Assembly: GCA_037447605.1 (NCBI GenBank)
Contig: CM074813.1
Span: 496,001 to 560,000 of the forward strand
Direction: 5' to 3'
DNA length: 64,000 nucleotides
From: Zygnema circumcarinatum SAG 698-1b
Taxonomy: Eukaryota; Plantae; Zygnematophyceae
How positions within the stretch are numbered: position 1 is the first letter of the stretch; every line of letters starts with the position of its first letter. The notes under the pieces are model-generated. The model was not told the DNA's origin. It ran no database searches and was given only the letters and a program-made list of their open reading frames with translations. Positions 59,382-63,102 of the stretch are shown here, piece by piece. Position numbers and translations under genes: made by a program.

Positions 59382-62300
59382 TCAGTACGCGGAATTCGGA
59401 GAGGGCGAGAGAGGGCGAGAGAGAGAGAGAGAGCGCCCCTCCAATATGCAGTCCATGACTCGGCTCGTTCTGAGCGCACTCTCTCCCGTGCTCGCACTCT
59501 CTCCCTCCCCTCTCAAAGCCTTCACTACTGTTTCAAGCAGCGGCTGCTGCACGTGCTTAGGGTTCGGCACCTCCAGTTCCGTGTACCCAGTTTGGTTCCA
59601 AATTTCAATTCTGTTCGATTTAAAGAACTGAAAACGTAATTTACCTTTGCTTCCCGTTACCGTTCCGTATTCTTCGTGCCCACTTTCACTGGCCACAAAG
59701 CACCAGGAGCCCGTTCCATGTACTCCGTTACTAAACGTGAAACTGGCGACAACGGTGTCCTCTGCGGGGTAAAGGCCGCCCTGATTACTTGCGCTCCCTG
59801 AAACGGAAATCTGTTCACATAGAAATGCAAACTTAGCAACTGCAGGGAGCACAGATAACTGAAAAGGAATGAAGAAAAGAGGTGAGTGGAGCTTTTTGGG
59901 ATTTTTGAGGGATGTACATAGTGGTCATGATTGTTCACGACAGAGTGAGAGAAAGGGGGAGAGGGAGAGGAAGAGGGACGGGGAGGAGTGGGCGAGAGAG
60001 GGGGAGATGGAGGGTGGGAGAGAGAGATATAGAGAGAGAGAGTTAGAGAGAGAGATAGAGAGAGAGTTAGAGGGAGAGGAGTTAGAGAGAGAGAGAGAGA
60101 GAGAGAGAGAGAGAGCTCACGATGGGTCCAAACCAGTACTCCAAGAGGTCCAATTGATGGCTCCCCTTGTCGCGGAAGTATCCTCCTGTTCCTCCCACCA
60201 TGGGATCCGTTCTCCATGGGAGCGTTCCGTTACGGAGAGCGGAACCAGAGGGGAGCATAGAACCCCCCGCCGCCGCCCAAATCAAGTCCCCTTTGTTAGG
60301 GGGTCGGTGGTAGGCCACGTGGACAGCTCGGGGGGTTCCAATAACTCCCTCTTCTAAAAGGGACTTTATCTGATGAAGAAAAAAAAAGGGGAAGCGAAAG
60401 TTTGGAGAAGAAAACGGGAGTTCAAGGGGATTGGATATGATCGGAAACATCATGTTTTAAAAAGTGACCTAATATGGGTTTCAATGAAAGTTTTCGTTCG
60501 TCTAAATCATCGAAGATTTTATCTTTTTAAGTTAAAAAGAACCAAGTGGGTTGGTTTCGTTTTTTAAGATTCGCATTAAGTTTCGAAATCGATCCAGACT
60601 CTTTTTACAAACCAATGAAGCCCCGACCCCCTTTTCCTTGCTTTTCCATCTCTCTCTCTCTCTCTCTCTCTCTCTCTCTCTCTCTCTCTCTCTCTCTCTC
60701 TCTCTCTCTCTCTCTCTCTCTCTCTCTCTCTCTCTCTCTCTCTCTCTCTCTCTCTCTCTCTCTCTCTCTCTCTCTCTCTCTCTCTCTCTCTCTCTCTCTC
60801 TCTCTCTCTCTCTCTCTCTCTCTCTCTCTCTCTCTCTCTCTCTCTCTCTCTCTCTCTCTCTTTCTCTGAATCATTCCAATATCCCATTTGTGGCAAAGGG
60901 CAAAAATAACACCACTTGAGCTGCTTTTGATGAAAGTACAATAAAAGCCCCAGAGCTCTGAATTCAGAAATGGCACATTTGAAATTGACCTTCAAAAAAT
61001 TCGGCAACGCGCGCCGATAGTAAGCCACATGGAGCGGCAGACCTTTCCGTTTAAAGGTTGCTACAATATTAGCCCCTGCCACGTGGCTCACTCCCATTGG
61101 CTTCTCCACATACACGGGCTTCCCCATCTCCGCAGCCAGTAGGGCATATCTGGAAGGTTCCAAGAAGGTGCGAAAGTCATCAGGAAATGGAGCAGACATG
61201 TCTTCTAGAGTGTGCAGGAGAGAGGGAGGGGAGAGAGTGGGGAGAGAGAGGAAAAAGAATGGTCTTAGTGATGATAGGAGAGAGACTGAAGAAAGGGTTT
61301 AGAGATTAGGGTTAGGGTTTACATGGATGTCTAGTAGTCGGATATACAAGTAGAACTTCGCGCTAGAGTTCAGTTCCGAAGGGTTACTTAGGGTTACTTA
61401 GGGTTTGTAGTCAGGATTCAGAACTAGGGTTCAGAACCGGAGGTTAGGGTTAGGGTTAGGGTTAGGGTTAGGGTTAGGGTTAGGGTTAGGGTTAGGGTTA
61501 GGATTAGGGTTTTGGCGTTCTCACTTTGCGTGGAAGAGCGGCGGAGTGGCCACATAGATCGCGTTCACATCAGGGTCGGAAATGAGGTCCTCCGCACTGC
61601 TCCCCCACCTGACCAAGGAACAAACTGCCTCTTCAAGGCCCAAAATTGAAATAACTTCCTTCTAAAATTCTCAATATGTCCTAACTACCTCCCCCATTCC
61701 CGTTTCCCCAATCATATTTCGTTCTCTCTCTTCGCACCTCTCACTCTCTGGACTTCGAAAAACAAAAGAAAATGACTATACGGCACAGAACATGGACGAG
61801 ACATAGCTTAAAAAAAAACGAAAAAAAATGGAGTTGGTTTCCTTGTACTTTGGCACGCCATGGCGGCGAGCATAGTCCTCTGCCAGCGTGGCATTTCGCC
61901 GCATGACAGCTGTCAGCCGCGAGTGCGCGATCAGCTGCAGAGCGGGCCCTGACTTGCGCTCCGTGACGTCACCGCATCCAATGATGCCCCATTTTACCTG
62001 ATGGGGTGGTACAAGAACATTAGGGTTAAGGTTTAGGGTTAGGGTTAGGGTTAGGGTTAGGGTTAGGTTTTAGGGTTTAGGGTTTGGGGTTTAGGATTAG
62101 GGTTTGGAAAGCGTCAGGAAACAATGTGAGGATAGAGAACTGGTGCGGTAGGAATGAAGGGCTGAAGGTGGGAGAGGGAGGACGATGGTAGCGGTGGGAG
62201 TTACTAGACTTCACTAGAGCGAGAGAGGGGGAAGGGGAGAGGGAGAGGGAGGGGTGGGGAAGTGGGAGGGGGGGAGGGAGGGGGAGGGGGAGAGGGAGGG

Positions 62301-63102
62301 AAAAGGGAGGGGAAGAGGGGGAGAGTGAGGGAGATGGAACGGGAGAGGGAGAGAGTGGGGAGACAGAAAGAGAGAGGGGCAACGAAATTGAAGCAAGGTT
62401 AAAATCGCAGAGGCTGAAGGGTTAGCAACCACCCTGCAATGGTCACAACCCTCAGAACCCTAGAACCTGAATAAAACCCTAAAAACTCCCAGAAAGTTTT
62501 GGAACTTAAATATTCTAAAACCTCATAAAATTAATTATCCTTGAAAAAGGAGTCAATTGCCCTCACCTCATCCAAGGGTTTGAAGGTCTTTCGCTGCACA
62601 TCATCGTCGGTGCTGTGGGCGGCATAAATGACCAAGCCGACCAAAAACAATGCGAGGAATGCAGCAAATATGCGAGCCAACGGGGTGATTTCTGGAAAAG
62701 AAAAATACAAGAAAACGGGACTTCCAAATTTTTCAAACAGCTGAAAATACGCACAAGCCTCTCAGAAAGATCGTCCCTCTTCTTCCCCCCCCCCCCCCCC
62801 CCCCCCCCCCNNNNNNNNNNCTCAGAAAGATCGTCCCTCTTCTTCCCCCCCCCCCCCCCCTGCCACGTATGCATGCCTCACACGCATGCTGTGCATGGAG
62901 GACCCTCTTGCATGCATCTGCATGCATGTTTCAGGCCACACGATGTCCGCTCACATGAACACATGACCCCCTCATGCATCCATGCATGCCCGTCCGTACC
63001 TTGCCGTACAGGCCCGCCCCGGGGCGCCGCCGCCCGCATGCTCCTCCCCATCTCCGCGACCTCGCTCGCATGCGCGCCCGCCAGGTACCGCATGCGCAGC
63101 AT
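59382..63102 (-). CDS. Gfo/Idh/MocA-family NAD(P)-dependent oxidoreductase with an N-terminal transmembrane anchor; 7 exons, 432 aa
   Basis: Exons 63000-63102, 62567-62691, 61849-61997, 61525-61608, 60990-61149, 60121-60369, 59382-59810 (1299 nt, phases consistent). VKWGIIGCGDVTERKSGPAL, AVMRR, DPDVNAIYVATPP..H, GKPVYVEKPM, VAYYRRALP, SHQLDLL, HVQQPLLE, STGESALRT..VMD. Confidence 0.9.
60649..60861. repeat. Perfect (CT)n of about 105 units in oxidoreductase intron 5
   Basis: Directly visible. Confidence 0.95.
61443..61510. repeat. Near-perfect (TTAGGG)n of about 11 units in oxidoreductase intron 4
   Basis: gttagggttagggttagg run. Confidence 0.9.

Follow-up and report, generated by a model that had tools for sequence, protein, structure and literature searches.

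A predicted signal-anchored Gfo/Idh/MocA oxidoreductase of bacterial type in the streptophyte alga Zygnema circumcarinatum

The stretch of Zygnema circumcarinatum SAG 698-1b DNA analysed here (GenBank assembly GCA_037447605.1, contig CM074813.1, positions 496,001 to 560,000; 64,000 nucleotides, hereafter the window) carries, on its minus strand between positions 63102 and 59382, a gene of seven exons and six introns which encodes a Gfo/Idh/MocA oxidoreductase preceded by a predicted membrane helix. The exon bounds were read from the sequence and checked by script. Together the exons amount to 1299 nt, that is 432 codons and a single terminal stop, in a frame free of internal stops, and each of the six introns is of the GT-AG type with a pyrimidine-rich tract ahead of its acceptor. 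The features of the gene, together with other elements of the window that are taken up further below, are collected in Table 1.

Table 1. Coordinates of the oxidoreductase gene and of other elements of the window (positions count from the first letter of the window).
Feature	Position	Strand	Content
Exon 1	63102-63000	-	ATG at 63102, donor GT at 62999; start codon and 34 codons, predicted basic cytosolic tail (MLRMRYLAG...)
Intron 1	62692-62999	-	carries the assembly gap and the 40-nt duplicates
Assembly gap	62811-62820		inside intron 1; distance 180 nt to the exon 1 donor above it and 120 nt to the exon 2 acceptor below it
Exact 40-nt direct duplicate	62761-62800 = 62821-62860		flanks of the gap, beside a 26-nt C homopolymer
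Exon 2	62567-62691	-	end of tail, transmembrane helix IFAAFLALFLVGLVIYAA (62618-62671), acidic stem ending FKPLDE
Exon 3	61849-61997	-	Rossmann start WGIIGCGDVTERKSGPA, strand ending VMRRN, sequon 1 NAT (61887-61895)
Exon 4	61525-61608	-	Rossmann middle (DPDVNAIYVATPPLFHA); intron phases as in Closterium
Exon 5	60990-61149	-	Rossmann end, catalytic EKP motif (61098-61106), AYYRR
Exon 6	60121-60369	-	first half of C-terminal domain; eukaryote-specific insertion with sequon 2 NGT (60223-60231); DKGSH (60157-60171)
Exon 7	59382-59810	-	second half of C-terminal domain (NQGGLYPAEDTV, GSWCF, HVQQPL, STGESA), sequon 3 NQT (59589-59597), low-complexity tail, stop
Microsatellite (TC)n / (GA)n	60649-60867		perfect, 219 nt, in intron 5
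Degenerate telomere-like arrays (CCCTAAA / CCCTAA)	59022-59344, 61442-61511, 62020-62104, 63128-63194, 21677, 32095-32277, 36415-36569, 50843		dispersed in the window
Near-identical open reading frame blocks	1546-2259 and 2860-3600		flank another N gap
Near-identical open reading frame blocks	44207-44908 and 45142-46032		flank another N gap

When the exons were compared with Pfam one by one, exons 3, 4 and 5 fell on positions 2-49, 52-75 and 79-120 of the 120-position profile PF01408 (GFO_IDH_MocA N-domain), and exons 6 and 7 on positions 4-64 and 67-124 of the GFO_IDH_MocA_C3 profile; because these positions run end to end, the exons tile both domains without loss. Exons 3, 4 and 5 score 18, 15.9 and 19 bits on PF01408, each under the 24-bit cut-off when taken alone, and full-length orthologues reach 62-74 bits on it. 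Exon 6 gives 38.9 bits on PF22725 (cut-off 27) and 31.8 bits, above cut-off, on PF02894, on which exon 7 gives 24.3 bits (cut-off 22.9). Two complete bacterial proteins, used as tblastn queries against the window, returned five colinear matches covering bacterial residues 7-322 and no second copy of the gene in the window, and at 45-52% identity exons 3-7 are colinear with complete bacterial Gfo/Idh/MocA enzymes. Residues E178, K179, P180, D283 and H287, invariant in a 62-sequence alignment (A2), are present here as VEKPM of exon 5 and DKGSH of exon 6, and a Y-R-R that is invariant in the same alignment is found in the AYYRR of exon 5. The protein is thus a member of the Gfo/Idh/MocA oxidoreductase family (PF01408 with PF22725/PF02894), and the initial annotation, made from the letters of the window, was right to read a complete dehydrogenase in exons 3-7, with all of the motifs it listed in place.

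Eukaryotic relatives were gathered by an exhaustive HMMER search with exon 7, by cluster look-ups and by two word searches. They were found in Chara braunii (GBG60568.1, P0006), Coleochaete scutata (a transcript, P0010), Spirogloea muscicola (two models, P0152 and P0269) and several strains of Closterium (P0002, P0153, P0187 and P0291), and as the EukProt transcript P0151 (431 amino acids), which is the closest of all at 61-65% identity per exon; three fragments (P0003-P0005) complete the group. The streptophyte orthologues are colinear with the exons at 52-74% identity per exon, exon 3 giving 65-74% and exon 7 52-65%. A land plant, a chlorophyte or any other eukaryote was found neither in the two word searches, which listed thousands of bacterial proteins, nor in the exhaustive HMMER search, and a word search with exon 7 alone brought up only 12 short proteins (43-49% identity), no named eukaryote being among their sources. 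The relatives are therefore confined, within the eukaryotes covered by these searches, to streptophyte algae, and the widespread vertical presence that the initial annotation had named as speaking against its proposal was not seen. Searches and the tree described below were run exon by exon, P0151 served as the full-length proxy, and the joined 432-residue model was used only to check frame, hydropathy and sequons.

Along this joined model there is a single 19-residue window with a Kyte-Doolittle mean of 2.4, which coincides with the exon 2 helix (residues ~38-60), and no other such segment. Ahead of the helix there are seven K/R vs. three D/E, and the helix is followed by STDDDVQRK. A transmembrane helix likewise precedes the Rossmann motif in the anchored orthologues P0151, Coleochaete P0010 and Closterium P0153/P0291, with best windows of 2.4-2.7 in P0151 and Closterium and 1.5 in Coleochaete, where the segment is shorter and signal-like; bacterial relatives, with no window above 1.2, have no hydrophobic segment and start only 3-10 residues ahead of the Rossmann motif (WGIIGCG). 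Coleochaete shows a hydrophobic N-terminus, a stem and ...PLSEVRWG, and Closterium a 19-residue tail, the helix, a stem and ...PVSEVRWA, so that the tail ranges from almost none in Coleochaete through that of Closterium to ~50 residues in P0151. Net charges of the orthologue flanks lie between +1 and +3 on the N side and between 0 and -2 on the C side. Because the N-side flank is positive and the C-side flank neutral or acidic, the positive-inside rule gives an N-in/C-out, that is type II, arrangement, from which a lumenal orientation of the catalytic domain is predicted. It was also observed that the very N-terminus, M(S)LRMRYLAG, is kept between this gene (63000-63102) and residues 1-11 of P0151, with two Arg within the first 5-6 residues; we take it to resemble the N-terminal di-arginine sorting signals of type II proteins in the endoplasmic reticulum (ER). 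The tails of Closterium and Coleochaete differ from it.

The catalytic part further contains three N-glycosylation sequons, NAT, NGT and NQT, which were followed through an alignment of 59 bacterial and up to 10 eukaryotic rows, our own exons being added one by one as fragments. Site 1 (NAT here; NAT, NLS or NGS elsewhere) is present in 6/7 eukaryotic vs. 1/59 bacterial rows, site 2 (NGT here; NAS, NTS or NAT) in 6/8 vs. 0/57, and site 3 (NQT here; NDT or NET) in 5/10 vs. 1/59. The variable positions change while N-X-S/T stays, as expected for sites in use, and this pattern speaks for an enzyme that is lumenal and glycosylated. The AlphaFold model of P0151 (mean predicted local distance difference test score, pLDDT, of 87.6, and ~98 over residues 80-425) places the three Asn at an N-cap after strand beta-2, in a eukaryote-specific loop and in a beta-hairpin turn. 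Both the added N-terminal signal anchor with type II polarity and the three sequons had been proposed in the initial annotation; the former now finds support in the anchors and charge bias of the orthologues, the latter in their retention by most eukaryotic members, and its reading of the enzyme as lumenal gains from the eukaryote-only conservation of the sites.

Outside the algae, a scan with exon 7 of one genome per prokaryotic species returned 43 loci, distributed over at least 10 phyla; for 33 of these loci identity was 39-52%. The matches came from Bacteroidota (Mariniphaga, Thermophagus), Deinococcota, Bacillota (Fredinandcohnia), Chloroflexota and Calditrichota among others, with further loci from Ignavibacteriota, Verrucomicrobiota, Spirochaetota, Pseudomonadota and Actinomycetota. 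In the two word searches everything below the few algal proteins was bacterial or metagenomic (41-51% identity), and the neighbours in the ESM Atlas are bacterial clusters. The earlier assignment to a bacterial-type subfamily thus stands, relatives outside the algal clade being all bacterial (42-52% identity). In a maximum-likelihood tree of 70 rows (LG+C20+F+G4, posterior mean site frequency model), in which this gene was represented by exon 7 and distant Oscillospiraceae members of the family served as outgroup, all eukaryotic rows form one clade with support of 100/99. Within it Chara branches first, followed by Coleochaete and then by Closterium, Spirogloea and the pair of P0151 and this gene, a species-like order that mirrors the accepted order of these algal classes and points to a zygnematophycean, or nearly zygnematophycean, position of this genome. 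The algal clade lies under bacterial nodes supported at 97/94, 97/85 and 97/87, and its neighbours are mostly Bacteroidota, KSB1 and Calditrichota. A bacterial origin of the gene is almost certain. We infer the direction and date of the transfer, the direction from the very unequal distribution of thousands of bacterial members vs. one narrow eukaryotic clade. A single horizontal acquisition before the split of Charophyceae, Coleochaetophyceae and Zygnematophyceae is the most likely course of events, and the acquisition is old and common to these three classes, not private to this genome.

Intron positions add to this history. In Closterium sp. Naga37s-1 (CANJKZ010000802.1, L045:4001-7674) each of exons 3-7 aligns end to end with one exon, and the extrapolated exon ends coincide with AG and GT, their phases being those seen here, so that introns 2-6 are common to both genomes. 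In Chara braunii (BFEA01000012.1, L044:5962-7080) the same 340 codons form one uninterrupted exon, on a 6.95-Mb scaffold. Six spliceosomal introns, five of them common to Closterium, and the Chara scaffold show a gene integrated in the host genome rather than a contaminant; the argument from six introns that the initial annotation had made for host integration therefore holds, the introns being canonical and five of them shared in position and phase. The simplest history would start with one transfer before Charophyceae diverged, after which the anchor would have been added; introns would have been gained later, on the line leading to Zygnematophyceae, and the gene would have been lost in embryophytes. 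Some deposited models deserve a remark. That of Closterium sp. Naga37s-1 is mis-built: partial extra copies resembling exons 3 and 6 occur in the locus (L045 4949-5113, 6588-6764, 6865-6915 and 7019-7063), and the true last exon (L045 7300-7674) is missing from P0153, while the NIES-68 model P0291 looks complete. The annotated start of the Chara protein (MIGCG...) cuts into the Rossmann motif, and upstream of it the reading frame continues without a stop as far as MGDEGPPSIQRLEEVRWG, ahead of which stands an acceptor-like ttacag.

The first two exons are separated by an assembly gap (Table 1), which no reading frame or codon spans. Its flanks form an exact direct duplicate beside a homopolymer, a pattern that fits two overlapping contig ends left unmerged at the homopolymer; the real intron 1 is probably shorter by ~60 nt, without loss of sequence. 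Because exon 3 has no in-frame ATG and the bacterial relatives begin so close to WGIIGCG, a coding exon must lie upstream. The identity of this upstream exon is indicated by P0151, which starts with MSLRMRYLAGG vs. MLRMRYLAGA here, the octapeptide LRMRYLAG being identical (P0151 residues 3-10), and continues with a transmembrane helix and ...FKPLEELRWGIVGCG, vs. FKPLDE/VKWGIIGCG across the junction of exons 2 and 3 here. The stem motif FKPLDE corresponds to FKPLEE in P0151, PVSE in Closterium and PLSE in Coleochaete, and the exon 2/3 junction lies at the same residue and in the same phase as in Closterium. The N-terminus, helix and stem of an orthologue thus show independently, at the level of sequence, that exons 1 and 2 are parts of a single gene.

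Cumulatively, we consider it probable that the locus is a nuclear gene in intact form, encoding a type II membrane protein of ~432 amino acids with a single membrane pass, a lumenal oxidoreductase derived from bacteria. The short Arg-rich N-terminal tail would stay in the cytosol, one signal-anchor helix would span the ER or Golgi membrane, and a stem of ~16 residues would link the helix to a complete lumenal Gfo/Idh/MocA domain, N-glycosylated at up to three sites and descended from a cytoplasmic bacterial enzyme of a subfamily commonest in Bacteroidota and other FCB-group bacteria. With the conserved Lys of EKP and the Asp-x3-His pair, the enzyme would move a hydride between its bound nicotinamide cofactor and a sugar, cyclitol or nucleotide sugar, the group concerned being a secondary hydroxyl or a keto group. 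Strand beta-2 is followed by M-R-R-N, and in alignments with solved structures the Arg pair lies opposite the Asp of NAD-dependent WlbA and the Ser-Arg of TM0312. As Arg-Arg after beta-2 points to NADP(H) in Rossmann folds, its presence where NAD-specific relatives have an acidic residue suggests this cofactor. We know of no established supply of free NADP(H) for such an enzyme in the secretory lumen, and for this reason the most likely mode would be that of a retained, tightly bound cofactor recycled within the reaction, by analogy with the periplasmic glucose-fructose oxidoreductase and with Golgi enzymes of the UXS/GAE type.

The nearest solved structures, only 17-24% identical, belong to enzymes whose substrates are in every case sugars, cyclitols, nucleotide sugars or diols. 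Comparison of sequences gave WlbA, TM0312, dihydrodiol dehydrogenase and 1,5-anhydro-D-fructose reductase, and comparison of folds 1,5-anhydro-D-fructose reductase, TM0312, glucose-fructose oxidoreductase, WlbA and KijD10. We therefore propose no more than a hydride-transfer enzyme of carbohydrate type. The best structural matches to the P0151 model are 1,5-anhydro-D-fructose reductase (PDB 2glx, 4koa) and TM0312 (PDB 1zh8), with a Foldseek E of 1e-27 and a TM-score on the target of 0.85-0.87; the two-domain fold, EKP and D-x3-H are common to all, but these enzymes are soluble and cytoplasmic, share 21-24% identity (21-22% for 1,5-anhydro-D-fructose reductase) and provide no link to that substrate. 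Among solved structures the best sequence match is the UDP-GlcNAcA 3-dehydrogenase WlbA (PDB 3q2k; E 1e-20 over P0151 residues 84-422), whose substrate is a nucleotide sugar and whose cofactor stays bound; its identity is ~25% or less, and with Asp vs. Arg-Arg after beta-2 its cofactor preference probably differs. Searches of the PDB with exons 6 and 7 singly gave no match at E 0.01. On the profile of the myo-inositol 2-dehydrogenase IolG (TIGR04380, cut-off 355 bits) P0151 scored 100 bits, bacterial relatives 114-124 and single exons no more than 21. No NCBIfam equivalog came near its cut-off, and the labels of inositol, xylose, levoglucosan and UDP-GlcNAc dehydrogenase were rejected.

Comparison with known systems shows parts of the design elsewhere. 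The closest proteins, at 42-52% identity over the catalytic domain, form an uncharacterised bacterial Gfo/Idh/MocA subfamily (proteins of Spirosoma, Mariniphaga and Fredinandcohnia annotated 'Gfo/Idh/MocA family oxidoreductase', the Dyadobacter 'Oxidoreductase P35', and JGI entries labelled 1,5-anhydro-D-fructose reductase), none of whose members has a demonstrated function. They have the same motifs (WGIIGCGDVTExKSGP, VMRRN, VYVEKPM, AYYRR, GLYPAEDTV, GSWCF, HVQQPL and STGxSA), but with ~325-340 amino acids they lack the N-terminal extension, the hydrophobic helix and the ~20-residue insertion in the C-terminal domain, and their ~1 sequon per protein almost never falls on the three eukaryotic sites. 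The best functional analogy for a lumenal enzyme would be the glucose-fructose oxidoreductase of Zymomonas mobilis (PDB 1ofg, 1h6d), a structural match at 18% identity which works outside the cytoplasm with permanently bound NADP; it differs as a soluble enzyme, neither membrane-anchored nor glycosylated, whose export relies on a cleaved signal peptide. The plant Golgi type II enzymes of nucleotide-sugar interconversion (membrane-bound UXS, GAE and MUR4) combine a short cytosolic tail, a signal anchor and a stem with a lumenal Rossmann enzyme holding a bound nicotinamide cofactor, but their fold is that of the short-chain dehydrogenases/reductases, their substrate domain is unrelated to Gfo/Idh/MocA, and they are present in land plants. 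Angiosperm At4g09670 (PDB 1ydw) belongs to the same superfamily and its Rossmann domain aligns, but it matches only P0151 residues 85-202 (E 2e-11), is of another subfamily and has no anchor, in agreement with the contrast to angiosperm types drawn in the initial annotation. That annotation had named no described function for such an architecture either, and in the literature on streptophytes, horizontal gene transfer and the Golgi we found no description of a signal-anchored Gfo/Idh/MocA enzyme or of this algal family. Secreted or periplasmic Gfo/Idh/MocA members and type II plant Golgi Rossmann enzymes are already known, and it is their combination which appears new.

Several observations weigh against the reading of the protein as a lumenal enzyme of bacterial descent, or limit it. 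The Spirogloea models have no anchor, and for Chara an anchor exon was not found within 6 kb upstream, where only a low-complexity T-rich stretch was seen; either the anchor is younger than the transfer, or the Chara and Spirogloea models may be incomplete. None of the three sequons is present in Chara, and in Coleochaete the first alone is; moreover, since sequon 1 adjoins the presumed 2'-phosphate-binding Arg pair, a glycan there might be awkward. The junctions 63000/62691 and 62567/61997 rest on homology. An approximately unbiased (AU) test does not reject a topology in which all ingroup bacteria form one clade (delta lnL 3.9, p 0.45), and because of this result the donor and a strict nesting inside bacteria are not established. 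The horizontal acquisition proposed in the initial annotation accordingly stands as far as the bacterial relatives and the narrow eukaryotic clade are concerned; as to nesting, the phylogeny it called for recovers the eukaryotes as one clade placed inside bacteria by branch supports, a placement that the AU test does not prove. The closest characterised enzyme is only ~24% identical, the NCBIfam equivalogs score far under their cut-offs, and any substrate named would be a guess. Gene neighbourhood is conserved in one bacterial family only, the Prolixibacteraceae, and differs in the other phyla, for which reason no substrate is read from gene context. There the gene lies in a same-strand row (L002, L005, L010, L016, L018, L020, L026 and L033), preceded by genes for a PfkB-type sugar kinase and a LarA N-domain protein and followed by those for a PdxB-like 2-hydroxyacid dehydrogenase with DUF3410 and a 6-phosphogluconate dehydrogenase; the row may represent a sugar-acid pathway.

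Keeping these points in mind, we weighed other readings. The helix could tether an enzyme whose catalytic domain faces the cytosol (N-out, as a hairpin or through a peripheral anchor) and uses cytosolic NADP(H) like its bacterial ancestors. This would solve the problem of cofactor supply and would suit the lack of all three sequons in Chara, and the topology proposed here is, after all, drawn from sequence. We nevertheless judge it unlikely, as a positive charge bias on the N side is seen here and in 4/4 anchored orthologues, and as N-X-S/T is kept in the eukaryotic clade while other residues vary and is almost absent from 57-59 bacterial sequences, a pattern that a cytosolic location would leave unexplained. 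Alternatively, the Arg-rich N-terminus could act as a presequence for an organelle, with the helix lodged as a stop-transfer anchor in a membrane of the mitochondrion or plastid. Exon 1 is indeed Arg- and Ala-rich, with seven K/R in the first 41 residues, and designs of presequence plus anchor exist, but the tail contains acidic residues and differs greatly in length among orthologues, unlike a conserved presequence, and conserved sequons would be meaningless in organelles; we regard this reading as decidedly improbable.

A third possibility concerns the origin and not the location of the enzyme: no transfer into algae may have occurred, the gene being either an ancient eukaryotic one lost nearly everywhere or the source from which bacteria obtained theirs, with an alga as donor. 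The AU test would permit it, as it cannot reject an algal clade outside all ingroup bacteria, but thousands of bacterial members in at least 10 phyla stand against one narrow eukaryotic clade, the distant outgroup is also bacterial, branch supports put the algal clade inside bacteria, the Chara catalytic region is intronless, and no chlorophyte, land plant or other eukaryote appeared in the two word searches and the exhaustive HMMER search, all of which make this account very hard to sustain. Lastly, that exons 1 and 2 are foreign to the gene (through mis-scaffolding across the gap, or as a chance open reading frame) and the real start lies elsewhere is scarcely credible: the gap does sit between them and the junctions are homology-based, but exon 3, having no in-frame ATG, needs an upstream exon, the flanks of the gap overlap by 40 exact bases, the octapeptide and the helix plus FKPL(D/E)E stem are common with P0151, and the exon 2/3 junction is at the Closterium residue and phase.

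Other elements of the window were observed alongside the gene. Besides the microsatellite of intron 5, introns 2 and 6 are filled by shorter low-complexity tracts rich in GA and in GGGAGA, and exon 7 passes through such a tract over its last 20 codons. The degenerate telomere-like arrays comprise 28 matches to three units, with up to two mismatches, vs. 0 expected; some sit in introns 2 and 4 of the oxidoreductase gene and directly 3' of it. Two other N gaps are flanked by near-identical blocks of open reading frame, which suggests that duplicated contig ends at gaps, as at 62811-62820, are frequent in the assembly; by eye, the second pair resembles a putative pectin-lyase-fold or polygalacturonase-type exon.

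Returning to the lumenal reading of the enzyme, a wider proposal can be put forward, although we regard it as speculative and doubtful in its full extent: the family may be an unrecognised class of lumenal, cofactor-retaining oxidoreductases which, in the ER or Golgi of the algae nearest to land plants, would modify either a nucleotide sugar or a polysaccharide of wall or mucilage during its synthesis, for example by forming a keto-sugar or an epimer in a cycle of oxidation and reduction, and which would have been made from a bacterial cytoplasmic enzyme by the addition of an anchor and sequons and dropped at the move to land. The choice of Golgi over ER and the role in wall or mucilage glycans are guesses. 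Streptophyte algae are the reference for the origin of land-plant walls and secretory biochemistry, and bacterial gene transfers into the streptophyte lineage are an active topic. In this family the steps of domestication can be read from the sequences, in the intronless catalytic region of Chara, the anchor, the three conserved sequons and the five introns common to Closterium. The candidate is easy to test, as its soluble domain should be expressible and Closterium is genetically manipulable. To our knowledge, and in agreement with our literature search, no redox enzyme of the Gfo/Idh/MocA fold is known from the plant secretory pathway; if lumenal as predicted, the protein would add one to that pathway and would point to a sugar modification of these algae that land plants lack.

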